From: Kudoa neothunni
Lineage: Eukaryota > Animalia > Cnidaria
Direction of reading: 5' to 3'
NCBI GenBank assembly: GCA_964304625.1
Contig: OZ199839.1
Location: forward strand, 263,970-327,969
DNA: 64,000 nucleotides
The translations under genes and the position numbers were made by a program. Below the pieces are notes generated by a model. It was not told where the DNA came from. It saw only the letters and a list, made by a program, of their open reading frames with translations, and ran no database searches. Positions 15,101 through 61,857 of the stretch are shown piece by piece; position 1 is the stretch's first letter; each line of letters begins with the position of its first letter.

Positions 15101-18100
15101 CCATGAATAATATAACTTCTTAGAAATCTTGAAACACGTGACAAACGGCATTATGAAAAAATTGTCTGCATCCAATTTAGATGCCGCCTAATTTACTCCT
15201 GGTTGAGAATCCCTGATCTAAATAATTATTTACTTCGTTTAATAGTTTTATTTATTTTTATAGTCATCTAAGAATGTTTAACTAATTTAAATTTATTGTT
15301 TCGTCTTCGACACGCATGAAATAACTCAATTTTTTTGTGGAGTTATTCTTCAAATAATAATAATAGCTCCCATATACATAATTCAGTACGAAATTAATTA
15401 TATAAGGATCATCTAGTTGTAAAGTTATTATATCGGGGAATTTATTCCTGAGGATCCATGAGGCCAAAACTGGACAAAAAATTTTTATACGTTAGTTTCT
15501 ATATCAGTTTCATATTTGAGTAAAGAAAAATTTATCTGTGAAAATAGATTTAAGGAATAGTAATTTAAACTATTTTAGATATATCTATGCCATTTTTAAT
15601 AGAAAATAACTTTTGAAATAATAGCTTGCATAAAACATTCTAATATTTATTAAAAATTGGCCTACAATAATAATACAAGTAATATTAATAATTTAACAAC
15701 TCAAAAGAATTGTTAGTTTTAAAAATCAAGTTAAAAAATTGTTCGCAACGTTTTAACCCCGCGAACCTCTGTATTGTAACATTGAGATTTTAAGATTTGA
15801 GCTCGTAATTAAACATTATAAAAGATTATAATCGATATTTGCGTTTCATTAAGTTGTGAATCGGAAAGTTTATAATAGATTATCACTGGGGAAATTTTTT
15901 AGTGGAATTGTGTCATGGAAGAAGATTTTAATCTAATTGTGATATTTCTCTTAATTTTTGTTGATGATTAATCGTAAACTTTAATCGTTGGGTTTCTCTT
16001 TAAATGCTAACATTATTTAAAAAATTGTAATTTTCTATGGTTGAGAAATTAAATAGGTTAATGCGGACATAATTTCTTCTTTTATGCGTAAATCAAATGT
16101 TGTATTATATAATTATTTTTGTTTATCTTGTACGCTCTAAATCTCAATGAGTTAAGGCCGTTTGAATAAGAAAATGCAGCGTTAATCAATAAATTAGTTG
16201 ACTTTGTTAGGCAATTTGTTCTTCACATCTTTTATTTATGTTACCGACGATGTCTTGTTAGAATACTGAACGAATCTTCAAAAATTAGACTCATTTTTAT
16301 GTATAACATTATAAAGTTTTTAAATTTATTATTCTTAATTAATTAGTAAACAGTTCTGCATTTTGTAAGTAAAGCAGTTCACTAAAATTACTTGATTGTA
16401 TTTTAGCCTTTCGTGAATGTGCCATAACAACCTTTGTTAACTGTAGTAAAGTTAATTCAGTGCCTAACTTACATTAACCGCATATTTTAAATAGAGCTGT
16501 TAATAGCTTGATAAATTATTATCACCAGCAAAATGACGTCATAATAGTGACTTTTTATAGGGAGTTTTTCGCAGTGATACTTTTAACCGTGCTATGTCAA
16601 CTTTGAATGGACAAGATGACTCGCTTCTAGACAGCGACAAAAACAATCGAAACCATTCCAAAAAAGACAAATTCAAATCTCCCGCTAGAAAACAGTCTAT
16701 GAACACTTGTATTGATAATGTTTCGCGTCTTGTTGAACTTGGCATCAAAAAAAGCTATACACCCATAATTGTGTTCAGTTTCAGCAAAAAGGAATGCGAG
16801 GCATATGCCACAGGATTAGCTAAAATGAATTTGAATGATGACACCGAGAAATACAACATAGACAAAGTGTTTTCGAGTGCAATTGCATGCTTGTCTGACC
16901 AAGACAAAGAACTACCTCAAGTTAAAAATGCGTTACCACTTTTGTTGAGAGGTATTGGAATCCACCATTCGGGATTGATGCCAATTCTGAAAGAGATCAC
17001 TGAGATTCTATTTTCCGAAGGACTCATTAAGGTATTTGCAATGATTGATTACGGATTTGAACTGCTGGACTAATGTAAAATTGATATACACATGACATGG
17101 CTGTTTTAGGTGTTGTTCGCGACTGAAACGTTTGCGATGGGCTTAAATATGCCAGCAAGAACTGTGATTTTTACAAGTATAAAAAAATTTGATGGTACCG
17201 AACGCCGTACTCTCACCAGCGGTGAATATATTCAAATGAGTGGTCGTGCTGGTCGTAGAGGTTTGGATGATCGTGGAATTGTCATTCTCATTGCAGACAG
17301 CAAACTTGATCCAACTGAAGGAAGAAATCTTCTCCAAGGTGACCCTGATCAATTAATTAGTGCGTTCCGTCTCACCTACAATATGTTGTTGAATTTGCTG
17401 CGTCTTGAGGGAGTAAATCCTGAGTATATGGTTGAGAAAAGCTTCCATCAATTCCAAATCAGTTCTTCTATTCCCGAGAAATTGGAAAGTAACATCTAAG
17501 ATCATGATGTTTATCTCTCTATAGATTCACTTTTTCGCCTTCTCATAATGTTTTATGTTGTAGGGGTCAAATCGCTCGAAATAGAGTACGAAAGATTGAA
17601 TGTGACTGACGATGACAGCAAATCCGACGATATCGAATCATACATGATTTTGAAGAATAATGTTGATTCGATGGCGTTACAAGTGAACAACTATATTCGG
17701 GATCCTAAATATGTTCTTCCATACTTACAACCTGGAAGACTGATTAAAATCAAACACAAAGACGAAGATTTCAATTGGGGTTGTTTGGTTAATTTCCAAA
17801 AACGCAAACAAGGCTCCAATCATGTATATATCCTCGAAATTCTCCTCAACTGTGACAACACCACAATAAAAACCTCGTCCTACCAATTTCCAAAACCCGC
17901 TCCACCAAACGCTAAACCTAATCAAGTTGAAATGGTTGTACTTCCCGTTAGTTTGGAGATGGTAGATGCCATTAGTTGTATCAAAATTTTTATCCCTTCG
18001 GATGTCCGGTCTTCTGATGCTCGTCGTCGCATTTCAATGACCGTCAAAGAGATCGAGAAAAAGTTTTTGAACGATCTCCCTCTTCTTGATCCTATCAAGG

Positions 18101-20224
18101 ATATGCATATAAACGAGGAAGATTTTCTACAGCTACATTCTGCCTATCAACGTTTGTGTGATCGTTTGAGTGTGCATCCATTCCATCAAAAATACACCGA
18201 AATCACACAACAATCCGATAACGGGAACAATATTTATCTCGAGAAATTGAATAATAAAATGGCTTTGGGTCTTCAGTTGCGATTAGCTAAAGATGATCTC
18301 AAACATGTGAAGGATGTTGTTCAGTTGAACGAGTTGAAGTGCAGAAAAAGGGTTCTTCGAAGGTGATTGTTGTTGCTTAGTGTATGTTGGCCGATACGAG
18401 GGAATTTTAATCTAAAAAATGCATGGGGGCATGCACCAGCATTTTTTAATTCCAGACATCTTAAGATCCTTTCATATTTAAGTTTTTACCCTTGTTAAAT
18501 GTTTGACATTATTTGTCACAGGAAATGCTAAGATAATCCATAACAAAAAATTTACTATATCATTATTTCTATTTCGATAACAATATAGATTTATCTATAG
18601 TTATTAACTAAAATATAAAATATTATTGTTTAGCATATTTATTTTATAAACTAATAAAATAAGTTTAAAAGCGTTATTATTTAATGATTGTGATTAAATA
18701 ATGAATTTTTAATAAAATTTCAATATAGTTTATTTTCATGTTATTTTGATATTATAATTTATTTTTTACATTATCATCGTTATATTATAGTAATTAAATT
18801 TAACGTTGTTAAATAGTTTAATTTTTATCATTGTAGTCATAAATATTTAATTTGTGTCAACAAAAGAAATTGTATACATTTTTGGTTTATTTTAATATTA
18901 TTCATATTAATAGAGTTAAATAATTTGAAATAGACGAACTTTTGATTAATTATTTAGAATTTTCCTAAAAATTTGGAGAGTATATTATCGTTTGATTGTA
19001 TCCTATATTCACATATGTATAAACCAATTTTGAAATAATTAACGACTGCAGGCATTAAGTTAGCTATCAAATGTTGTTGATTTAATGCGAGTGGTATTTT
19101 TTAATTTTCACAAAATTTCTCTTAGATGGTGAAATTACGCAATTTTCGTTTGGTAATGGATGTTCTACCTAACTCAAAATTTTGTTTGTGCTATCCATTA
19201 GTTATTTATTTTTAACGTTTTTACAGTAATTGTTAGCTGAGGGTTATTTTCTGGATATATCACCCCTATGTCTAATTTGTAATCGTATTAAAATTAATAA
19301 GACAACTTTAATTTTTATAGTTAGCTGTTTTATTTCTTTGGCTATTTCAAAATTCGAGTATAACATCGGAAAACTCCATCCATATCAGTTGAATTTTTTG
19401 TGATTATAATTATCACATTCTTATTATTATAAATTCAAAACTTGTATCGCTAGTCACACGATTTCTGCAGCTGACACTACATATCGTATTGACGTTGGTT
19501 TTTTTAGGCTGGGATTCATATCGTCGGCTGATGTGATTGAACTTAAAGGTAGAGTTGCTTGCGAGATAAGCAGGTAAATTGAAAATAATTTTAACTTTTT
19601 TATTCGGTATCTATATGGATAACCTCATAACTTATATAGTGCCGATGAACTGCTTCTTACTGAAATGTTATTCAATGGAGTGTTCAACGAATTGAGCGTA
19701 CATCAAATAAGTGCGCTATTGAGTTGTTTCGTATTCCAAGAGAAGGTATACCTGTTTTATATTCTGCTTATTTTCCATCCGATTATAGACAAATACCACT
19801 GGAAACGTTAAACTTGAAAGCGAACTAAGCGGACCTCTTAAGATACTGCAAGATACCGCAAAGAAAATAGCCAAAGTTTCCAACGAAGCGAAATTCTCAC
19901 TTGATTCCACTCAATACGTGAATCAATTCGTATCCATGTTGATGGATGTTGTGTATACATGGTCGAAAGGTGCGTCGTTTTCCCAGATATCAAAAATGAC
20001 GGATGTTTTCGAAGGTTATTTCTAACATTTGACCAGTTATTCAACACCTGTGATTATATTAAATAGGAAGCATTATTCGATGTATAAGACGATTGGAAGA
20101 ACTTGTTAGACAACTATGCATGGCCGCGAAAGTTATTGGAAATAATGAACTAGAGGAAAAATTCTCACAGGCTGTGCAATGTATTAAAAGAGATATTATT
20201 TTTGCCGCTAGTTTGTACCTATAA
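12150..20224 (+). CDS. MTREX: Exosome RNA helicase MTR4 (SKIV2L2/MTREX), about 13 exons
   Basis: Spliced translation gives [69 protein letters not shown], the arch/KOW region and C-terminal [11 protein letters not shown]. Introns are GT-AG; the long ones are ~13494-16560 and ~18363-19508. Two apparent +1 insertions near 13283-13304. Confidence 0.95.
14880..15215. mobile_element. hAT (Charlie-like) MITE inside an MTR4 intron
   Basis: TIRs cagaggttctcaa / ttgagaatccctg; imperfect 8-bp TSD ttctaaag / atctaaat. Confidence 0.55.
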
Positions 20225-28832: not shown

Positions 28833-30981
28833 TCATTGAGTCGAATTTTTAGACGGAGAAATTCTTTCGAATATCCGATCCAACTTTTTGTATACGTAAA
28901 ATATTCGTGGTCTCACATTAGGGTCATGATGCCAACAGCTGCTTATGAGCTCATGCAGATCCTTCGAAAGAGTAGAGTGATCCCATTCTGCACACAATGT
29001 TGGTCTCAAACGCTGTTCGCATACTATTGGGTACAATTGTTTGAGAGTTGGTTGTGGCTCTATCAGATCGTTGTATGGCTCCTCATGATCATAGAAACCT
29101 CCTAAAAAAATAATATCAACCACACTTCAAATCACTCACCTGATCCTTCGTTGATAGTGTAGCATCTGAATATCTCCCACATAACAAAACCCAACGAATA
29201 GATGTCCGCTTTGAGAAAATCATTGAATGATAAAGTTAAGTTTTCTACATTTGAATGAAGATTAAATGAAATAATTTCAGGGGCCATATATCGACGTGTT
29301 CCTACTGCCTAAATCGGATGGGGTCTTTGAACAAATCTATCGTTAAATTTATTATAATACATTGTGGAAAGATATATAAGATGATAATCTGAGTATTTGA
29401 TCCCCCTTCTTATTGGAATTGCTAATAGTAGAACTTTGATTTTCGTTGTTGTAACTTCCACCTGTGAAGGATTTTAGTTGGTCTCCGTCGGACGCTATTT
29501 GAGAACATTCTACCAAAGACATTCCTAGATCTGCAATACAGCATTGGCCATCATTTTTGAGTAGGATATTTTTGGTTTTTATATCACGATGAGCAATTCT
29601 TGGTTTCATTGTACCATGCCCAAGGATCTCCGAATGAAGATAGCTCAATCCAGCACATATGGAAATTATAATTTGCTTCAAATCAAAAAGATAACATTTG
29701 TTTAATGACAGACTTTGGTGATGAAAACCGCCGGCAAGATAATCATAAATTGAACCTTTGGGATGATGATCAAATATAAGCCAATATTCTTGTGGACCGT
29801 GATCATTGTAACAATCCATGGATATAAAACCTAGAATTTACCATTAACAACGCCTTAATGTCATTACTATTGTGGTTACATAATACATTTTCATGTCTTA
29901 AATGGTAGTTGTAATATATGGCTGCTTCATGAAGTGCAGATTCTGTTTCTGTGATTATTTTCACCACTACAGGGTTGTTTTTCCACACCCCAGAGTAGAC
30001 TTTGCCGAATTTTCCTGTTCCTATTAACGTATTTAGCTTAATTTGGCAGGAAATTCTAGATTCCAATAAAATTGGATGACCACTTCCACTCGAATCTATA
30101 TCATTGTTGATAGTTAGTGATTTTTATTCCGAGCGCATTTACTTGTTAGAATGGAACGATTATCTGAGGTTATTGCGAAAGAATTCTCGCAATCAAAAAG
30201 CGACGAGTAACTGGAATTAGTATTGATATTGGTGTGACTGGATGAAGACTCGGTTTCGTCATTGTCTTTGTATGTGTGCTCAAACACTGTCTCAGTATTC
30301 GTGTGATTAAGCAACCCGTTTTCCTCGCTATTATTTTCATTATTAGTGTTGTTAACAGTTGAACCGATTGGAGATGGGCTATTTTCAAATTTATCTTTAA
30401 TACGTCGATAAATTAAACATTTCCATGCATCCTTAATGCCATCCATTGTTGCCAATCGCTGTAAGATTCCACCACAAGAAAGCAGCAATACAACAGCAAC
30501 AATCGCAGCCATTAAAAGAATAAATTTCCATGAGACTTCTTCACGATTAAATTGCAAAAACTTACCATATTTGATGTAATCTTCTGTAAAGATTCATATT
30601 ATAAAATGGATATCAAATTTAGTTACCCGAAGAGAGTATATTTTCGACGGGCATATTTATTTCGCCGTTACATAATAACTCGGATGTGTTATTACGACAG
30701 CATCTAGTGTATACATTGATATCAGTCAAGTTGTAGCGGCAGAATAGGGCAATAACAGTGGCCTCTCCATTGGGCGGAATGCACGCTCTTTTGATTGTCA
30801 TTGGAGGCTCAGGTAATTTTTTCGATATAATAACACTTGCATAACAATAGCTATCAGTAAAACAAGTGTGACTACCACCGCAATCGTCACAGTAGCATTG
30901 ATACAAGGTTTCGGCAGATGAACCTTTCGGCTTCACTCCCCAAACGGCTAGCTCGATAATGACAATCACAAAGATAAACAT
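28833..30981 (-). CDS. TGF-beta/BMP/activin type I receptor Ser/Thr kinase
   Basis: Signal peptide; three-finger ectodomain (CYCDDC...C....C...CC....CN); TM FILLMAAIVAVVLLLSC; GS box SSGSG. Kinase motifs GTGKFG, VVVK, LRHEN, HRDIKTKN, DLG, GTRRYMAPE, KADIYSLG, CWHHDP..RP. About 6 exons. Confidence 0.92.
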
Positions 30982-37868: not shown

Positions 37869-38548
37869 ATGCCTATTATTATCAGAAGAGCTGTTATCAA
37901 TGACTTGGTAGATATGCAGCATATGAACATTATGTGTCTTCCTGAGAATTACACGATGCGCTACTATTTGTATCATCTTTTGACATGGCCTGAACTCTCG
38001 TTTGTTGCGTACGAAGGCAAAGATAAAATTGTTGGATATGTGTTGGGAAAGTTGGACGACGATGATACCATTGATAGTCATCCTTCTCCTTCCAAACAAA
38101 AAATTGTGTTGGGTCATATCACCAGTTTAGCTGTTAAATTGTCATATCGGAAGTTGGGCATCGCGAAAGCATTAATGGATTTTGTTGAAAGGCAAATGGC
38201 AATGTTGTACTCAGCCACACATGTCACACTACATGTCAGGGTTGGTAACAGTGGTGCGTTGCATCTCTACCGCAAATCGTTAAAATTTCAAGTAACCCCT
38301 ACTCAGATTCTATAGATTCTATAGATGTTATGTTATGGTGGGGATGTTTCTCACATTTTGTCCTTTAGGTTAAAGCTGTCGAAAACAAATACTATGGAGA
38401 CGGTGAAGATGCATACATCATGGAAAAACCCCTCAATCGCCAATTTCATATTGATTTCTATCAATACACACTGCTAAGGGCCAAAGAAATCCACCAGAAG
38501 GTGAAAGAAGCCTTCATGGTTGATCACCTTAGCAAGGTGGTGTTCTAA
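37869..38548 (+). CDS. NAA10: N-alpha-acetyltransferase 10 (NatA catalytic subunit, ARD1), 2 exons
   Basis: MQHMNIMCLPENY.MRYYLYH.LTWPELSFVA, GHITSLAV..SYRKLGIA, TLHVRVGN.GALHLY. Intron 38291-38368; exon 2 KYYGDGEDAY.M; stop at 38548. Confidence 0.95.
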
Positions 38549-42236: not shown

Positions 42237-44723
42237 CCCTCCAACGGATGAAAAAACGACCACCCTCCAACGGGATTTGGGGTAAAAAAGACCCCAGATT
42301 TTTTTAAATTTAATGTATGCAGAAAATTATTATAAACTTATGAGGGAAATATGGGAAAATTCTGCCTAAGTAACGCTGAGAAAATAATCAATTACTTCAT
42401 AATTAATCTTCAGTAATCCTCTTCGGCAAGATTAAGCAGATATCGCGATAAATCGTTTTTATAACGTATAATATGTTTAGTCTTATTTAAAATAATGAAA
42501 AATAACATTTTAGTAAAAAATAAAAGATAAAATATTTTCAAGGGTCCCTAATAAATTTGGTTTATATTAGCTAGCAATTTAGATATTTATTTGACGAATG
42601 GGCGCGACAGTAGAAACTTCCACATTTTGAGCATTTGGATGAGGTTTTCTTATCGTTTTCACGAGGACAATGTGCACATCTTCGTTTAGAAGTATTTGAA
42701 TCTGCAAAGTTGTATGTTTCCATAGAAGTTGGATGAGATCTTTTTGAACATTTTTTCATTTGGGAATTTCTCTCCAAAAGAGGTTTATACAACTCTCCAG
42801 CCATTTCTTTCAGAAAATCACGTCTCAATTTTGTGGAATCGTTAAATATGTGTTTATATAGACAAAATGAATTTATTAAAGTCAAATCCAACATATTATA
42901 AAAGACCACCATGGGCCAGCGTCGATTAAATCTGCGGACCGAAACGGAAGCCAACATCCGATCCACGGTATCTACTCCTCCTTTGGAACCATTATAATCC
43001 ACTATTGTTTCAGGCTTTTGTTTATGTGTATCGTTGGTTATGTTGGTGTTGGTTGTTCCTGAGGATAGGAGAATCACCGCTCTTCTTTTTTTGTTGACAT
43101 ATGAAGTGATCATATATTTATCAAAAAATATAAACATAGTGCTGAATAAGGAACGATTTCTAGACGGAAGAACACACGGTGGTAAATCTCTCTTATTGTG
43201 TCGAATTGTTCCAAGGTATGTCAGACGTTTGTCTAACAGCTTCTCGGCTAGTCTAAGGGAAGAGAAAAAATTATCTGCAACTATAGTTCTTCCTGAGTTA
43301 TACAAGGGAGCTGTAAGGGAAAGCACAATATTCTCACCAACACCACAGTTTTGGCTAGCTTGAGTTCCGTTCTTTCCTAGATAGGGAGAAATGTTTACAA
43401 CATATTTGTGGACTGGATCGACAGCTAGGAAAAACTTTAGGCCATATTTCGCCGGCTTCATCGGCATATATTGTCTAAATGAGCATCTTCCTCTAAACGA
43501 GACTAACTGCTCGTCAACGGTAACATTTTCACCGGGGAAAAAACATATAGGTAGAGTCTGGATCCACATGTTCCATATGTTGCGAATTGGACAAAATTTA
43601 TCCAATTCTCTTCTTTCAGATCTGGTGCTTGGATTATTAAAATGAATACATCGTAGAATTTGGCGAAAACGATTAAATGAAAAGATTTCGCGATACATCT
43701 CTCTCCCTTCCTTTATACTAAACATTTCTAAAAGAGGTTGCTCTCTGTCTTTGTAGACAGCCATCAAAATTAGTGTTCCGAAAAATCCTCTTAATTCAAC
43801 GTCGTCTAAATCATTCCATAAATCAGAAAAGTGTAATTTCCCGTGAACGTTTGTTTGTTTTATTATTTCCTGGCAAATTTCATCAGTGAAGAATATAAAA
43901 AAACAGTCCAACACGTTTTTGACTCTTTGTATGCAATAAGCTGTTGGCCCAGGTCGAGGATTCATGATATTCTCCTTCAGCATTTTTGATGGAGGTGGCT
44001 TATTCAATGTCCAAAGTATTCCGCTTTTGCTTGTCGTAGAATCCGCAGGATGTTCGCAATCTGATGTATCATCGGATTCTTCGGAATATTCAAGAACGGT
44101 TTCATCAATGTCGCTACTTAAAGGTTGATATTCATCGCTAAAATCCTCAGATGGTGCCATGATTATCTCAATGTGCGCAACAAACGATAAAATTGGTGTA
44201 TATTTCGCGTTAACTCTCATATACGGTCCTAAGGCTTAAATTATCTATAGCTTATTTTGTAGGGGATTATTTATTGCTAGTACACGGAGGTAATATGTTA
44301 ATTTTGTTTGTATTTAGCTAATAAACATTGACCTTGCGGTATTCATATAAACGATGGTTACGATATGTTGCGATTACATACTTAATCGGATTACGGCGGA
44401 TTATATTGATTAATAATTGCTGAATTTGACAGTATTTATTAGGCAGATTTTTTTTTAAATTTCCAAATCATCTTATAATAATTTTCTACATACGTCAAAT
44501 CAAAAAAAATCTGGGGTCTTTTTTACCCCAAAGCCCGTTGGAAGATAAAAATTTTGTTCGATAAGAAATAATCAATATTCCACATAAAGATTTTTATAAA
44601 TCTATTTATTAAAATAATTTAGGAGAATAGACGAAATTTTAAGTATCCCAGATAATTATAAAATATTCTATGGACAAATTAAAATCGTTTTGGGGTCTAA
44701 AAGACCCCAAGCCCGTTAGAGGG
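42237..44723 (-). mobile_element. Full-length piggyBac transposon
   Basis: TTAA TSDs at 42233-42236 and 44724-44727. TIRs ccctccaacgg / ccgttagaggg. Long subterminal inverted repeats. Uninterrupted transposase ORF. Confidence 0.97.
42571..44220 (-). CDS. piggyBac transposase (DDD), 549 aa; likely start at the second Met (MAPSEDF)
   Basis: Catalytic TVDEQ, VADNFF and GGVDTVD; KPAKYG; acidic N-terminus; Cys-rich C-terminal domain. Confidence 0.96.
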   Translation of the reverse strand: MRVNAKYTPILSFVAHIEIIMAPSEDFSDEYQPLSSDIDETVLEYSEESDDTSDCEHPADSTTSKSGILWTLNKPPPSKMLKENIMNPRPGPTAYCIQRVKNVLDCFFIFFTDEICQEIIKQTNVHGKLHFSDLWNDLDDVELRGFFGTLILMAVYKDREQPLLEMFSIKEGREMYREIFSFNRFRQILRCIHFNNPSTRSERRELDKFCPIRNIWNMWIQTLPICFFPGENVTVDEQLVSFRGRCSFRQYMPMKPAKYGLKFFLAVDPVHKYVVNISPYLGKNGTQASQNCGVGENIVLSLTAPLYNSGRTIVADNFFSSLRLAEKLLDKRLTYLGTIRHNKRDLPPCVLPSRNRSLFSTMFIFFDKYMITSYVNKKRRAVILLSSGTTNTNITNDTHKQKPETIVDYNGSKGGVDTVDRMLASVSVRRFNRRWPMVVFYNMLDLTLINSFCLYKHIFNDSTKLRRDFLKEMAGELYKPLLERNSQMKKCSKRSHPTSMETYNFADSNTSKRRCAHCPRENDKKTSSKCSKCGSFYCRAHSSNKYLNC

Positions 44724-45076
44724 TTAAAAACGCAACACATTAGCCTAGGATCAAACTGAAACCAAAGACGCTCGGAAGATTAAATAATGAATTAATTTGG
44801 CCACCATAGATCCAATATCCAGAGAAGTTATGGTTTTGTAGAGGTAAATTTAGTAGGTTAGATTTTTACTTTATCTTGAGAGAAGGGAGACCGAAATTTG
44901 CTAACAATTTGGGTGATGCGCATACCGTCTATGTGGCTGGTCTGAAAAATTAAGAACTCAACAAATTCAATAGTTTCTGATTTTAAATCGAAAGAAATGC
45001 AGCTAATTCAACTCACTATAGTATAAATATTTTTACGAATGAATTTTAGTAGATTTTATTCGACTCAATATGACGT

Positions 45077-48000
45077 CTAAAATCTAGACGTGATTTTGGA
45101 TTTTTGGGGTCGATTTGTCTTTTTATAGTAGATAAATCCAAAAATCGTAATGCCAGTTATGAGGATTAACGAAGCCAGTATTATTCCCGTTATCGCTGAT
45201 GGGCCAAGTTTTTTGGGAGGTGGTATTGGAGGTGGGCTAGTAAATAATTTATTGTTATGAAATCAATATTTATTATGGTATGTGTTAATAAAAATTACGT
45301 TGTAACAATGACTAGAATGTCATCATATTTTCTAAATCCAAATCTTGAGTCGCCCAAAATATAAATTTCGTCACATGTCAGTTTCATTTTAGGGGGTCTA
45401 ATAGTAAGAGAACGTGTTTTGAGCTCTAGAAAGAGTTTCAAAATTTACGCTAAAATGACTTCAAGTGTATTCTCGCTGTTTTCTCCTTGTGTTAAATCTA
45501 CCACAGTGTATAAATATGTTAGATATAGACACGTATCCACGATATTAGGCTTGGTCTATTCTCGAAGATTAGTTTTAGTATAAATGGAACATTTTATAAA
45601 ATATTTTCTATAAATTACATCTTTTTCACATGACCTCTTAATTTTGCCCATAATTGTGCTCAGAAATTGTATTGGAGTTGATTTTTTGATAGTAAAATAT
45701 TCATTGTATATCTGGAAGATAATCAATCATTATGAAATTGTGGTTATTGACACATACAAGTAAATGATGATTGGTCAAAGGTATGAATTGTTTAGTTATA
45801 GAGGAAAGGTTGCAGTATTCCGTTGATCTACGACAAATACCTTTTTCGTAAAGGTAGGTTTTAAGCATCATGGCACAATTCCCGAAATCAAATGCTCCAA
45901 TCATGGTTATTGTACCGTCCATCTTGAAGAATGAATCACAATGTGTATTAACATCTGACTCTTTAACAGCTATTTCGTTCCCAATACGCATACATGGATT
46001 TTGAAGAGGTTGCGAATGAGAAGAATCTTTACTTCTCTATGAGATAAAAATATTGTAATACTCATTTAAAAATTCATGTTACTTCGACTATATTTTTCAG
46101 TATTATTCTTCTCAACACCCCAAGTGAAGCACAACTGAAATTGTTAGAGTAGGCAGTATATCGTTGATTGTTAAAGGAGAATTTCATAATATATTTACTA
46201 TCATAGACATCTATCTCCTCCGTTAAAAATCCAACGAAAAAGTTCCTGGTATGCAGACCCATTACTATTCTATTTCCTGATTTTATCTATTAATGCATGT
46301 GTTATGATATATTATTCGAGTCAACTCTAAACACAGGAGTGTTAAATTTATACTTTTGGTAGTTGTTTATGAATTTTATCAAAAAAAAGGTAAAATCCCG
46401 ATCTAAGTCCATTAAGTAGTTCTTGACTTTCATAGTTTTTCTTTTGATAATAGCTCTCCAGTATACCCATATGTTCATTCATTATTTGTCGTATTTCATT
46501 AGGAGAGTTACTAAGACGGAATACCAACAATAATAATTATCATACATGCTAGAATTACGCGTAGTTTAACTCGTCTTCATAGACAAATCGTAAATATACT
46601 ACATCCGAGTTGATATTTTCCAGGCGGCAACGAGATTTAATTTTAGCCAGGCAATCAGTTATTTCAACTGTTTGAATTAGAAAAACTTATAATCGGCCGT
46701 TCATAAACAGAATATAAAGTTATTAGGGAAATGAAAAATAAACCAATAAAGATAAGATAGCGTCTCTTTCCACTACACCGGTGTATGTGCGGGGGATTAT
46801 AGGATTATATTTATTTCGCTTTTTCTATAGGTTACAGCGCGTTTACAAACAATTCAGCCCATAAAAATGATAAAATATATTTTTCAGATATTACTTATTT
46901 ATGTAAAATGATTACAGATTATAAAACTTAACTGTTATTTTTTGAAACATATTATCGATATATATTTTCAAGGTTTATGATTAAGGAATGCGATATTAAT
47001 CAGAAAAAAAGAATTATTTTCTTCATGAATACAAAAAAATAATTTATATTGTATCAAAATAAATTTTAGGTTAGAATTCACAATAGTCAACCGAGTGTCT
47101 TCACGTATAATCAACAATGTGAGGCGAACTCTATAGATAAAGTTCCACATATAAAATTGAAATCGCGAAATTTATTTTAACAATATAATATGGCGAAATG
47201 TGTACACAGATTATTTAAAAGTCAATTTTCCTCGTATACAGAAATGAAACAATGTCTCGATAATTTTATTAAAGTACTGTTGTAAAATATTAAATTCTTA
47301 CATCAAAATAAAGGAATCTGGTTTCTCCTACAGAAATGGTAGGAGCATCAAACTTAAAAATGAAGGTAATCAGTCGGATAATGTTAATAATAACAAAAGA
47401 ATAAAGGAAAGTCTTGAATCCGATTTGAACATCCCTTTCAGCTTAAAAAAATTAGAAACATGAAATATCGCACAAAGAAGAATACTCAAGAATCATTCTC
47501 AATGGAAGACCTTTCCAATAAATACGATGGTAAACTCTTGCTTGATATCTACAAAGAAACAGAATCGGATGAACTAAACGTTTTCTGTTTCACTACGAAA
47601 AAATATGAAAAATCTCTATTCTAATTATGGTCAAATTTTACATATTGACACAACCTACAAAGTAAACAAGTTATCCATTGTACCACTTTGCAGTAGTTGA
47701 TTCTCATGGACGAACTCGATCAATCTTCTTCGCTTTTGTTAAAAATGAAACTCAAAATTTTGTTGATAATGTGATATTTTCGTTTTCTAAATTAATGGAA
47801 GAAACAAAAATAACAAAAGTTATCTTTGTTGATAAGGATTCAACTGGAATTAATTCATTAAAGAGATTTTTATTTAATGCAAATATATTATTATGTTCTT
47901 ATCATGTAGAAAAATCAATGGAAAGAAAAATTCACTCACTTGAAGTCAATAAAAGTACAAAAAATAGATTAAAAACCCTTTCAAAACAAGCCATTTATTC

Positions 48001-49490
48001 TAAATCATACGATGAATATCTATTCTATTAGATGAAATAAAACAAACGAATAACACATACTTTTTTTTACCTTTCAAAATGTTGGTTAGGTATTTGTGAT
48101 GTGGGTACAATGTCTGAGAAAAAACATAATGACTTTTGGATCCAATACTAATAATAGAATTGAATAAGCCCATGGAAAACTCAAAAGTTTTTTATCTAAG
48201 CAATCTCCATTACCAAATCAGATAGATGAAATTCTTCGTTGTGTTAATATATTGGATAGCGAATTCAGTAACAAAGAACAACAATTATCTATGAACGCAC
48301 ATAGGATATCCAATGATGCTGAATTAAATCAACTCCTCATTCATTTTTCTCCTTACTGTTGGGAAAAATTTTTAGAAAATTTCAATTCCAATAATTATAT
48401 TACAATGTGGGAATCAAAAACTTATTTATTTGTTCATCTGAAATCAAACTTTGCTATGGTTATTAAAAGTAATGAAACAATCGTCTGTGACTGTCCATTC
48501 TTCCATACAGCATAATCTATCTTGCAATCATCTGATCACTCTAATGAAATTATCTATAATAAGTAGTGAAGCAATTGTTACAACAAGATGGACCAAAAAT
48601 AACCTTTTAAATGGAAAATCACCCGCTATATTTCCTGAAATTTGCGATGATAATTCACCATTGTCGAACTCATTTGTTGATAACGAAATGTTATTAGAGG
48701 ATTCTCCTTCAAAGGATGATAATGTGAATTTAAAGTTTCGACAAAACAATGAGCTAACGCAAAGAGTGCTAAACACATTAAATTCATTGGATGGAGAGGA
48801 GTATCGGAATTTTTACAATGAGATATTCAACTCACTTCAAAATTTTGAAAAAACTGTCACTCATAGTATAAGTGAAAAAATGCGCCAAATAAAATAATAA
48901 CATTACAAATGAAAGAGGTTATATCGAAAGGTAGACCTAGAGTCCCAAAAAATTATTTGAAATTTTCAAAATAACGTTCTGACTAGTTATTCTAATACAA
49001 AAAAATATATTTTATCATTTTTATGAGCTGTTTTGTTTGTAAAAGCGTTGTAACGTACAGAAAAAGCGAAAATAACATAATCCTATAATCCCCGCGCATG
49101 GACCGATGCAGTGGAAAGAGACACTATAAAAGATAAGATAATGTTTATTGCAAAAAAATTGTTGGGTTAAAATCAATTCATAATTTTTAAAATTAATACT
49201 CATTAAAAAAAATATATAAAAATACATACGCTTTAGACAGTTCTCGCCAAATTTTACCGGTATTTGAAATCTTCCAGTTTGTGGATCTAACATTCGAGCA
49301 TGGTAACAGATAAACGAAACCGTATTGTATGGATTTATAACTCCAACGATGCCATACTAAAGTGAAATCAAAACGGGACCAAGCATTAACAGAGTAGTAC
49401 TAAATAATTAGGTTCACAACCAACCTGGTACAGTCCATTGAGCAAAAATAATAGGAACAATTTTTGTATATAACAGCAAGTTATTCCCAT
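45077..49490 (-). CDS. CD39/GDA1 (E-NTPDase)-fold type I membrane protein with degenerate catalytic motifs, about 10 exons
   Basis: Manual GT-AG splicing gives a continuous frame: signal MGITCCYIQKLFLLFLLNG; YGIVGVINPYNT; ITDCLAK..VVYLRF; LLNGLRSGFYLF; IVMGLHTRNFFVGF; YTAYSNNFSC; QNPCM; GAFDFGNC; CLYLTYLY; IYILG; Pro-rich stalk; TM AITGIILASLILITGITIFGFIYY; short basic tail. Motif order and the Cys pattern follow CD39. Confidence 0.7.
46757..49127 (+). mobile_element. Mutator-like element (MULE, ZSWIM type), decayed, inside intron 2 of the NTPDase-like gene
   Basis: TIRs of ~130 bp (atagcgtctctttccact... / ...agtggaaagagacactat); near-direct flanks taaagataag / aaaagataag. Relic IDTTYKVN, FVDKD, CSYH, TNNRIE and SWIM finger CDC..CNH. 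Confidence 0.92.
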
Positions 49491-57917: not shown

Positions 57918-59455
57918 TTATTTCGTATTAGTTGGTTTAAAACTTGAAAATATTTTTCTGTTGTTTGTTAGCTGTATAGGACGATAATTTCCACAAAGGG
58001 ATTTCCCATCAATCCCTTTAAGTGAGTTAAGTATGAAAAACTAAATGTGAAAATTAGTTTAATCTCTTACAAAATTGTTACATCATCAGGGTCTCCATTT
58101 ACTACATTTTTGAAGATTACCCATGTAACTGATTCAGAGCATGGAGGGGTAGTAAGAGAACCTCGATAGGTAAAGTATTCTGGATTTTTTGACGTTTTAA
58201 ATGAAGGAAACATCAACGAACCAGGGACACCTTCGGTAAGTGTGTATTCGGTATCTGGAGGCCTTTGATAGAAAACTGAACAAAGATTTGAAAAATTTTT
58301 ACTTGCATTTGTAACGAGAGGGGCGTATTTCACAAAATAACGAAGTGTACTATTTATTCTGGATGCCTGAATATATTCAATATGAACCAACGAATTTTAT
58401 TTTAGACTCACTTTTATTCGGCTAGAAATTATGAGAAAACCGTCGCTGTGTGAATTAGCTTCCGTTGAACTATTATATCTTGTGTTTTGAAATAAGTAAT
58501 GCATCTACATATACATTATAGGGATGATGTTATTTAAACATGTGTAATGCAACCTCTCCAGAGTAACTCGATCCATCGACAGTGTGTTCAGTGCCGACAC
58601 TTTTATTACATCCAAAATGAAGATGTACGTGCTGTAGCAGATATTCTTCAGTGCCAGTAAACCCTCCAGTCAACAAAAAGTTGGTTTTTCCTTCATCTAT
58701 GTCAAGGCCATATGAATAACCATTATTGATAAATTGCCCAAATATCATATTATTATCGGAATGTATGCTAAAAATCATTGGATCTATTTTATCCGCCATT
58801 GAACTATCAGCCTCATCAGATTCGATTGCTATTGGTGATTGTCTGGTGCCACTGCTACATTTATCGTAGTGTTCACCCCATTTATTTGGCCCAAATGCTT
58901 AATATTGAATTCATTAATTTTTTACTCATTTCATGAGTCTATATACTCGAATCCGTATCACGATAACCCCATAATGTGGGTTTTGGTATAGCGGCGGTTG
59001 TTGTGGTTGTAGTGGGTGGAGGGATGGTAGTTGTTGTAGTAGGCGGAGGAGTGGTAGTGGTTGTAGTAGGTGGAGGAGGAGTGGTAGTTGTTGTAGTAGG
59101 CGGAGGTGTAGTTGTGGTTGTAGTAGGTGGAGGTGTAGTTGTCGTCGTAGTGGTAGGCGGCGCTGTGGTCGGTAACACGGTTGTAGTTATTAATGTGATA
59201 GGTCGTTGAGTAATAACAATAGTTTCGGTGCAACCATCACAGGGTTTTGTTTTGGCTTTGGATGCAGTAGAAAGTATAGTTTCTTTGAAACCATCAGGGC
59301 GTTCTTTTACTGAAGCTGAAGCATTGCTGCTAACCTCAACATTGGACCAACTCCTCCCTATCAATTTAAATTCAATTATATATTTGTTTAGCTAAATTAA
59401 ACTCACCATTGTGTAAATATATAATCAAAAGTAAATTACAGAAATGTGATAACAT
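57918..59455 (-). CDS. Secreted alpha-carbonic anhydrase with an N-terminal Pro/Thr mucin-like stalk, about 6 exons
   Basis: Signal MLSHFCNLLLIIYL; WGY..GPNKW..C..G.RQSPI; HVHLHFG; GTEHTVDG..YSGE|MHY; YFTYRGSLTTPPCSESVTW; NYRPIQ. All three Zn-binding His present. Confidence 0.93.
58994..59185 (-). repeat. Coding tandem repeat (P2-4 T5-7)n, mucin-like
   Basis: About six PPPTTTTTT units with varied third codon positions, in the carbonic anhydrase exon. Confidence 0.9.
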
Positions 59456-59570: not shown

Positions 59571-60586
59571 ATGCGATATTTTTCAAGTTTTATACTCTTT
59601 ATTACTTTATTAAATATTAAAAAGAACGCCCCACAAAGTAATACAGAGGAAGTATTGAGCGATTCGAGAAATTTGACCAATCCATACGACTTTGAGATAA
59701 ATAATTTGCTTTTTATTGATCCCTCTTCGAGTAACCACACTTTATTTATTATAAATATTAAATTAATCAAATTATATGAAATTGTAGGGTATGTCTATAC
59801 CAAAAGCTCATCCAAGGGGTCAGTTAACGATTGCGATCTTGGGCATTGTGAAAACACACTCCCAGATCACGAACAGAATCTAATTGAGAAAATTTTGTCT
59901 TTTAATAATAATAAAACAAAGAATGATGACGGTATTATTCAAACATATTTGTGTTATTTTAAAAAATATCTAAAAGAAAAATCCGGCAATAAAGATGCGA
60001 AGGAGTCATGGGACGAGCTGTGTCAATTTGGTCAACATCAATCTCCAATCAATATAAAGAAAGCATCTGCAGTCAAACCAAATGAATTTAGTATCATTTA
60101 CAATCTTGATATATCTAAAATAGAATGGAGACCATTCTACAAAAAACACAATTTTGGGGTTGAAAATATATCCAACTGTACACAACCTCATCTCTATGTG
60201 AATTCGTCCATGTTCAACTTGAACAACAAAGCCTACTGCCTTAGTAATATTCATATTCATCTGAGTTGTGATACAGATACCTTTGGATCAGAACACGCTC
60301 TTGATTTTGAAAAATTTCATGCCGAAGTAACAAAAATTAAACTTTTTAATTGTAAATAATATTAAATTCTTAGCTTCATTTGGTGTACATCGATTATTCT
60401 AGCTTAAAAAATACGAGTGACGACAATAATGACCAGCTCACAATTTATGAAGCTGTTTTTTTACGAGTATTTGGATCACTATTTATTTATTTTGATAAAT
60501 TTCAACATGTAGGTATCCAATTCATACAGCCAATTAAATATCCTGGACAAACTGTTGAAAACTTTAATAAATTACAACTTCACTGG
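59571..60586 (+). CDS. Divergent secreted alpha-carbonic anhydrase-like protein; 3' exons uncertain, possibly extending to ~61678
   Basis: Hydrophobic N-terminus; WDELCQFGQHQSPINI; NIHIHLSC; GSEHALD..FHAE|LHLV across GT-AG introns. No clear GSLTTPPC found. Confidence 0.75.
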
Positions 60587-61857
60587 TATTTATTTAATCA
60601 GTTTTATTTACCTAATCATTCATTATTTTATTAAAATATCGATATAAAATTTAGTTATTTTTTAATATAGCAAATAATAAAATAGGCTAATTAAAAATTA
60701 TTTATTTAAATTATATAAGTAATTTTTTAAAACTCTGTAAAGACAGATTTTATTTTTCTTACTAAAAAAGTATATTATATTTAATTGTTTGTGTCATTTA
60801 GTATATAATGAATAAATTACCTATCTCACATTTTATTTTTTTCCTAAATAAATATATAATATTATTGGGATATCTAAAACAAAAAGTTTAACTTGAAAAA
60901 TAACTTTCTGACTGATCTTTCAAATTTTGTTTGTATGCATTTAAATATATAGGTTATTATACTTAAATAACCCGTTTTTCCTATAATATTTCCCCTTTAA
61001 TTATTATATTGTGTGATAAAATCAAAATATATTTTTTAAATTAATTTACATGACATGTATTGAGCGAATTATTTTATTTAATGTTACATGTTTGGAGCAT
61101 GCTCAATATATTGATTAAAAGTTCAATACTTTCTTGGGTATGAAAAGGAAAATGTTTATACTATGAATACAAAACAAAATTAAATATTTCTTAAGATACA
61201 TTAATTGTGTGGTCTAATATATAGTATAAAGTCAATCAAAGATTGTGCCTGAATTTTGTGCGTTCAGATACACACGGGACGTAAAAAGGTTAACATATTT
61301 AACTATTAAAATATATATATATATATATATTAAAATTTTAATATCTCAGTAAATAACTACTATTTTTACTATTGTTTCATTAAAAATTAATATATATATT
61401 TAAATTTGTTGATAGAGAAATAATATTATTCGTTATAAACTTAATATCGCCACAAAATTTCGGTAATAATTTTAATTCATCTCTGGATAATCTAAGTTTT
61501 TTTATTAAATAATTAAGTAGTTTAGAAAACAAAATTTTTGATATAAAGTATTTGTATTACATCACTTTATGGTAGAAAAGTTCGATTAAAGTTTATTTTA
61601 GAGCTTTTTGAAGTAAGATCAACGTGTCTCTCCGGTAAATTCAAGGGAAGTCTGAGTACGATTCTCGGAAATAATTAAATCAATGATTTAAATGGTCGTA
61701 TTATTAGTTCTTAATAATTTTAATAATTGCGTCCACCCGTTTATATTTATTTGTGCAATAGTGTATTGTAAAAAATATAAGTCAAAGAATACGTAAATAC
61801 CAGTTCTAATGAATTTAAGTCGCTTTTCACCCATTTACAATACTCACTGTGAAAGTA

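Follow-up and report, generated by a model that had tools for sequence, protein, structure and literature searches.

The gene analyzed here lies on the minus strand at positions 49490-45077 of a 64,000-nt stretch of the Kudoa neothunni genome (contig OZ199839.1, positions 263,970-327,969, hereafter the window) and encodes a predicted type I membrane protein. Comparisons at family level indicate that its ancestor was a surface NTPDase belonging to the CD39 / NTPDase1-2-3-8 type, and its apyrase activity has very likely been lost. The gene is one of at least ~65 copies in the same genome, and we consider it probable that this pseudo-apyrase family member is used as a variable adhesin, ligand binder or surface antigen, with ecto-apyrase activity retained by two relatives with intact motifs, L074 and L092.

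Splice modelling in the window gave ten predicted exons joined in phase through nine introns, all of them GT-AG (phases 0,1,2,0,0,0,0,2,2). The coding total is 1425 nt, which corresponds to 474 amino acids plus the stop codon, with neither internal stops nor stops in split codons. A previous sequence-only reading had described about ten short exons of this kind, and the model bears it out. Eight of the introns measure 44-67 nt and have a GC content of 0.26, as against 0.27-0.39 in the exons, while intron 2 reaches 2562 nt because a MULE transposon sits inside it. Homologues of exons 4, 5 and 6 recur with near-constant length at more than 30 other loci (exon 5 measures 201 nt in 18 paralogue loci and exon 4 measures 154-160 nt in 24), and therefore the exon model is not attributable to chance; the script used for modelling the paralogues fixed the intron phases and left exact exon lengths free. 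The signal-peptide-like stretch, Pro-rich stalk, transmembrane helix (TM) and short basic tail proposed before were all present, with hydropathy values of 2.11 (KD11) for the N-terminal stretch and 2.47 (KD19) for the C-terminal TM. The ectodomain contains two N-glycosylation sequons and ten suitably placed Cys residues. The claim that the scaffold and its Cys residues are kept holds in that these ten are conserved in paralogues and four of them were aligned to NTPDase1 by the search tools; the five-disulfide pairing is presumed, as are, by inspection, the CD39 counterparts of the remaining Cys. The features of the gene, together with the transposon that it contains, are as follows.

49401-49490, minus strand: exon 1, with the start codon and the signal-peptide-like stretch (KD11 2.11); the same exon is found in paralogues and in the intact relative.
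49230-49356, minus strand: exon 2, with the strand equivalent to apyrase conserved region (ACR) 1 at 49321-49356, its DXG loop replaced (from exon position and alignment).
46757-49127, plus strand: degenerate MULE DNA transposon in intron 2, with terminal inverted repeats (TIRs) at 46757-46884 and 49001-49127 and its transposase in pieces.
46559-46667, minus strand: exon 3, with the Cys of the TDC helix and the ACR2 equivalent at 46567-46596, where FVYEDEL replaces FIGTGGL.
46354-46510, minus strand: exon 4, with the ACR3 equivalent at 46384-46416 (hhalign against L074 exon 4, E 0.0014).
46083-46286, minus strand: exon 5, with the ACR4 equivalent at 46236-46265 and a conserved F-x-C (E 0.0019 against L074 exon 5).
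45758-46036, minus strand: exon 6, the disulfide-rich part of domain II with five Cys (profile and fold matches).
45619-45711, minus strand: exon 7, a helical segment with one conserved Cys.
45449-45555, minus strand: exon 8, the C-L-x-L-T-Y helix, its Cys conserved family-wide.
45299-45397, minus strand: exon 9, with the ACR5 equivalent, probably DSRFG at 45337-45351; its Trp is lost.
45077-45236, minus strand: exon 10, with the Pro-rich stalk, the single TM at about 45125-45193 (KD19 2.47), the short basic tail and the stop codon.

The hidden CD39/apyrase fold claimed in the sequence-only reading was not detected by Pfam searches with the ten single exons of the window gene, none of which matched PF01150, and the GDA1/CD39 (PF01150) lineage is supported at the level of the family. 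Exons 5 and 6 of the window gene retrieved many paralogues from the genome. An exon-6 family profile made with 17 sequences ranked rat NTPDase1 first of 177,635 PDB sequences (E 0.23), and with 34 sequences the same protein was the top PDB match at E 0.0049, with four Cys in register. Likewise, 6 of the 34 exon-6 members matched PF01150, the best with an E of 9.7e-5, below the Pfam cut-off. Structure prediction pointed in the same direction, and more weakly for the window gene itself: for the AlphaFold (AF2) model of its exon 6 (pLDDT 72) the first 15 Foldseek matches were NTPDases, all of them weak (E 0.47 and above), and NTPDase1 was the sole VIA match (Z 2.2), and the model of the natural stop-free exon 4-intron-exon 5 frame of the paralogue L008 gave NTPDases at all of ranks 1-47 (best E 8.8e-4). 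The pieces so folded are fragments of domain II. In addition, family profiles built without L074 matched exons 4, 5 and 6 of this intact-motif gene collinearly, with E values of 1.4e-3, 1.9e-3 and 1.7e-6, respectively. Exon-5 sequence profiles gave only chance matches in PDB, without NTPDases, and a hemolysin match (E 0.4) was discarded as one of these; VIA gave no clear match for the L008 exon 4-5 model, and the ESM Atlas search yielded only sub-threshold matches to PAC2. All searches and folds were run exon by exon, and exon alignments were concatenated solely for the tree described below. The fold assignment is thus supported by independent tests on different exons, all indicating one family and a correct order of segments, and by intron positions common to intact NTPDase genes. 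These positions are presumably also those of vertebrate ENTPD1, although a literature search found no paper on this; if so, the family would have arisen within the NTPDase1/2/3/8 group.

K. neothunni is a myxozoan parasite of yellowfin tuna with a genome of 40.2 Mb (N50 12.0 Mb, GC 30.4%), organized in three chromosomes and a mitochondrial circle, with 49-bp introns and ~5,300 predicted proteins (PMC12239612). The sequence that we searched comprises 40,260,978 bases, with three contigs (17.15, 12.04 and 11.05 Mb) and a further ~18 kb (positions below carry the contig handles C1 to C3). L074 (C1 ~884-886 kb, minus strand) is a complete gene with DAGSTGT, IGTGGLR, ETEAEY, DIGGSSLQ and NWTLG, a signal peptide, one C-terminal TM and a basic tail, and L092 (C3 ~5.318 Mb, minus strand) is a second intact-motif gene, read through ACR4 and exon 6. 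Both are candidate active ecto-apyrases of Kudoa. Exon 2 of L074 matches PF01150 (E 3e-4), and the only PDB matches of its exon 5 are NTPDases. PF01150 over the whole genome found only a third NTPDase, which is Golgi-type and of different structure, and the weak ACR1 match on L074; these signal-peptide surface genes are barely or never detected by Pfam. The window gene shares with L074 and L092 the exon-intron phases (in L074, those of the first seven introns), the signal peptide, the PVKF...C that ends exon 2 and the Cys pattern, and with L074 also the single C-terminal TM and basic tail. It differs from them in that DAG/DVG, GTGGLR, the Glu and DIGGSS are all retained in the relatives, as is NWTLG in L074; besides, L074 lacks a stalk exon and has intron 8 in phase 0. 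The two TM helices of the cell-surface subfamily (NTPDase1/2/3/8) are represented in the window protein by one TM and a signal-peptide-like stretch. The sequence-only reading was right about this topology. Since the intact-motif L074, the one of the two relatives read to its end, is single-pass too, the topology is a feature of Kudoa surface NTPDases generally that predates motif loss.

Against this background, every catalytic motif of an active E-NTPDase (ACR1-ACR5) was found to be missing from the window protein. The segments quoted in the sequence-only reading were located at 49321-49356, 46567-46596, 46384-46416, 46236-46265 and 45352-45366, and its statement that both DXG loops and the catalytic Glu are lost was sustained by alignment of exons 2, 4 and 5 with L074 and L092. 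No Asp-x-Gly occurs in exon 2 when aligned to the intact-motif relatives, the register of ACR1 resting on exon position and alignment, since the profile comparison by itself was non-significant. In ACR2, FVYEDEL aligns to FIGTGGL (a weak match, E 0.05) and (A/G)T(A/G)G(M/L)R is absent. In ACR3, LNGLRSGFY aligns to VAEDETEAEY, so that the position of the catalytic Glu is occupied by Ser, or by Arg if the alignment is shifted by one. In ACR4, VMGLHTRNF aligns to VVDIGGSSL, with GLHTRN at DIGGSS, and the DXGG(A/S)S loop is absent. For ACR5 (xWxLG) we depart from the earlier assignment to IYILG. Across 17 family members the D of DSRFG is invariant and its G nearly so, with D-P-x-x-G conserved at ACR5, and for this reason DSRFG (45337-45351), five residues away, is probably the true equivalent; exon 9 contains no Trp in either register. 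The hhalign comparison with L074 did not fix the registers of ACR1 and ACR5. Replacing any one of these Asp, Glu or Trp residues is enough to abolish or cripple NTPDase activity. As the window protein has all of them replaced, loss of its activity is very likely, and although it descends from the GDA1/CD39 family it should not be filed as an NTPDase. In every productive NTPDase complex, it is the two DXG aspartates that hold the metal cofactor (PMC12489842).

The paralogue search that the sequence-only reading had proposed revealed that the window gene is not alone. A wider exon-6 profile gave 69 genome matches, that is ~66 loci besides L092, and the exon-5 profile added up to nine weak ones, which sets the estimated family size at no less than ~65 loci. 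They are distributed on all three chromosomes, both single and in tandem clusters. About 40 derived copies were inspected and ~25 further loci were counted by profile match only; exons 3-7 were open, with short introns, in 24 derived copies and in L074, while L005, L062, L065, L069, L070 and L040 looked broken or gave no model. As the assembly derives from ~7-fold read coverage (PMC12239612), the single-base indels of paralogues may be assembly errors. Loss of motifs is graded: none of the ~40 copies keeps DXG in ACR1 or ACR4, L078, L079 and L083 keep E-M-G in ACR4, the ACR3 Glu is found in L071, L072, L081, L082, L085 and L087, and basal members hold the ACR2 Thr or the ACR3 Glu, the other inspected copies retaining no catalytic motif. 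In a tree of exons 3-6 rooted on L074, the Glu-retaining copies fell outside the clade containing the window gene (63%, weak), which was sister to L005 (99%); with one outgroup and long branches, this topology does not prove the order of the motif-loss events. At the C-terminus, the majority of copies have a stalk rich in Ser/Thr, followed by a TM and a short tail; in L061 the stalk runs to over 300 residues of an 11-residue Thr-rich repeat. The copies are 15-45% identical to each other. Finally, two contigs (L088 and L089) of one ENA metagenome (ERZ28624939) carry members with the same exon layout and 34-44% identity to different subgroups. Since a second organism thus holds members of different subgroups, the family is older than K. 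neothunni, and the sample contains a related organism, probably an undetected myxozoan. Most other exon-6 profile matches among representatives, beyond these two true ones, were discarded as repeat artefacts, being long multi-stretch proteins that match only the short G-x-Y-x-x-x-C-x-x-L part.

Some loci deserve separate mention. L020 and L021 (C2 11.538 and 11.578 Mb) are 100% identical over 2705 nt at 40 kb from each other, which is either a very recent or an assembly duplication, and other equal-scoring pairs lie at C2 7.504/7.528 Mb and C1 16.157/16.181 Mb. Tandem clusters of very divergent members occupy C1 0.90-0.94 Mb, 20-55 kb from L074, and C1 16.15-16.31 Mb; L090 and L091, from tandem clusters, showed no recognisable motifs in the stretch read.

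Selection on the family is mostly purifying, as estimated from sequence comparison. The ratio of nonsynonymous to synonymous substitution (dN/dS, NG86) was 0.2-0.5 in 15 of the 17 paralogue pairs, a value near 1 being the one that would have argued against function; the window gene gave 0.23 in its comparison with L005, although with a dS near saturation (2.3). Purifying selection is clear in L078/L083 (pN/pS 0.53, p 5e-6). The young pair L061/L062 (C3 2.04 Mb and C2 7.35 Mb) behaved differently, with a pN of 0.104, a pS of 0.046 and 0.016 in introns (p 0.003 and 2e-10). This excess suggests diversifying selection on the ectodomain, in a single pair.

The 2.4-kb MULE in intron 2 had gone unmentioned in the sequence-only reading. 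Its transposase remnant matches PF10551 (E 1e-8), relatives are present at more than 30 places across the genome, its two TIRs are ~12% different, and no clear target-site duplication was found around it. As its nearest copies are 94-96% identical, the insertion would be young; the divergence of the TIRs (6.7% per arm) would overestimate its age, given these same sister copies, and was not accepted for dating. In simulations of neutral substitution, which ignore indels and splice sites, all exons remained stop-free in 21% of runs at 3.3% and in 5.6% at 6.7%, and therefore the frames kept intact since the insertion are weak evidence of function for the window gene. In L006, L009, L011, L013-L015, L018-L021, L056, L059, L063, L064 and L066, exon 2 was not found in the 850 nt that were retrieved ahead of exon 3. 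Intron 2 is accordingly often long in the family, where such a length seems to be tolerated, and it is possibly a repeated site of insertions. Beside the gene, a piggyBac-type transposon (window 42266-44542) contains an open reading frame at 42571-44220 (minus strand) for an open 549-aa transposase (PF13843, E 1.5e-71); its TIRs are 129 nt and merely 78% alike. A second piggyBac terminus-like copy (44689-44729) lies ~350 nt from the stop codon of the gene.

Apart from the missing Pfam match of its exons, several observations weigh against a functional pseudo-apyrase. In the window gene's own comparison dS is near saturation, exon 5 of L005, the paralogue nearest to it, is frameshifted, L062, which belongs to the sole pair with excess change, has five 1-nt indels, and the gene itself carries a 2.4-kb transposon. 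One rival reading is that the window copy is a recently silenced pseudogene, in which the MULE interfered with splicing or expression too recently for the exons to have decayed. The youth of the insertion, the 21% of neutral runs that leave exons stop-free at 3.3% (5.6% at 6.7%) and the number of broken or unmodelled paralogues all agree with such silencing. Nevertheless, all 18 splice sites and the whole 1425-nt coding sequence are preserved without a frameshift, although the transposase is fragmented, and many paralogues have a long intron 2, so that we regard silencing as unlikely. Another reading accepts a non-catalytic protein but makes it internal to the parasite: it would partner the two active NTPDases as a regulator or decoy, serve as a nucleotide sink, or be a structural component of the secretory pathway or spore wall, and would not face the host. 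CD39-type enzymes oligomerise, active relatives with the same topology exist, basal members keep part of the catalytic motifs, and most pairs show plain purifying selection. However, diversification driven by the host better accounts for ~65 copies at 15-45% identity, for mucin stalks that vary and for a pair in which nonsynonymous change is in excess, and the acidic, bulky residues of the cleft are unfavourable for nucleotides. This internal role also seems improbable.

It is still less likely, indeed very improbable, that the cleft was rebuilt for a different catalysis, giving a new enzyme instead of a pseudoenzyme. Although most members have Tyr at the ACR2 site and the D-P-x-x-G of ACR5 is conserved, exons 2-5 do not contain any family-invariant polar residue, and what is invariant in these exons and in exon 6 consists of the structural residues Cys, Gly and Pro. 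As for a coincidental resemblance to CD39 in a family of other fold, each single test is just moderately significant, and both the exon-5 profile and VIA on the exon 4-5 model failed to point to NTPDases. Such a coincidence is nevertheless scarcely credible, and already largely refuted by the agreement of tests on different exons about family and order and by the introns shared with intact NTPDase genes.

The pseudo-apyrase reading, which we prefer, would operate as follows. The signal peptide would direct the protein into secretion, and the ectodomain would fold into a disulfide-locked, glycosylated, two-lobed ASKHA (actin-like) structure, held off the membrane by a stalk that is short and Pro-rich here and comprises up to hundreds of Ser/Thr residues in paralogues. 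Since Tyr and acidic residues stand in the former nucleotide cleft where Gly and Thr stood, it should neither bind nor hydrolyse metal-ATP. The stable and diversified ectodomain may then offer a binding surface at a host or cell-cell interface, as adhesin, ligand binder or variable antigen, the tail being too short for a signalling domain. The two intact-motif relatives (C1 885 kb and C3 5.318 Mb) would be the ones that hydrolyse ATP and ADP on the surface of the parasite. The family is multi-copy and has the surface-type topology and diversified ectodomain of variant surface antigen families. Whether the CD39 scaffold has become the main variant surface repertoire of Kudoa is more doubtful; such a repertoire of 65-75 non-catalytic, stalked, diversifying ectodomains, binding host receptors or rotating as antigens in muscle-cell or invertebrate-host infection, is conceivable but we would not favour it. 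If it existed, the GDA1/CD39 fold would have its first known case of an expanded family of pseudoenzymes.

Other genes of the window are two divergently oriented alpha-carbonic-anhydrase-like genes, one at 58067-59364 on the minus strand, which seems to carry a Pro/Thr-rich mucin-like segment, and one at 59571-60634 on the plus strand, with a long N-terminal extension (PF00194, E 3e-11). An MTR4-like helicase (16594-18366), a TGF-beta type I receptor-like kinase gene (29352-30981) and an NAA10-like N-terminal acetyltransferase (37869-38315), the last two recognised by eye, are ordinary neighbours with no connection to the pseudo-apyrase gene.

Compared with known systems, the window protein has the scaffold, segment order and C-terminal TM of the cell-surface E-NTPDases (CD39/NTPDase1, 2, 3 and 8; PF01150; PDB 3ZX0 and 3CJ1), but it is devoid of the DXG loops, the ACR2 Thr/Gly, the ACR3 Glu and the ACR5 Trp, a cleavable-type signal peptide replaces the N-terminal TM, a stalk is present, and there are ~65 copies instead of four. 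The NTPDase fold has been found at the host-parasite interface, with evidence for adhesion, in Trypanosoma cruzi TcNTPDase-1 and the Leishmania E-NTPDases; unlike the present family, those are active, have all five ACRs and occur in one or two copies (PMC8630654). The protein mt-PCPH/ENTPD5 is also a catalytically inactive member of the GDA1/CD39 family (PMC3829800; PMC4090452), although it is the truncated frameshift product of one gene, whereas here the family appears full-length, selected and expanded. Variant surface families of parasites are likewise multi-copy, with a signal peptide, a Cys-rich ectodomain, one TM and a short tail. Among them are the VSP-, RIFIN- and STEVOR-like genes of the myxozoan Sphaerospora molnari, for which immune evasion or attachment has been proposed (10.64898/2026.02.11.705288); no relationship in sequence or fold with them was seen, and that paper names no apyrase, CD39 or NTPDase. 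Our literature search, whose coverage left out most subscription journals, found no paper on a myxozoan NTPDase or on an expanded pseudo-NTPDase family.

If true, the pseudo-apyrase reading would provide a fold and an origin for ~1% of the genes of one myxozoan (~65 of ~5,300; PMC12239612), which would be orphans under standard annotation. A single genome, in which the active relatives are still present, would also display the natural gradation between active ecto-apyrase and pseudoenzyme. The long-suspected non-enzymatic, adhesive side of CD39-type proteins would become directly testable. Finally, the family would supply concrete surface candidates for host recognition or immune evasion in a genus of fish-muscle parasites in which such molecules are poorly known.

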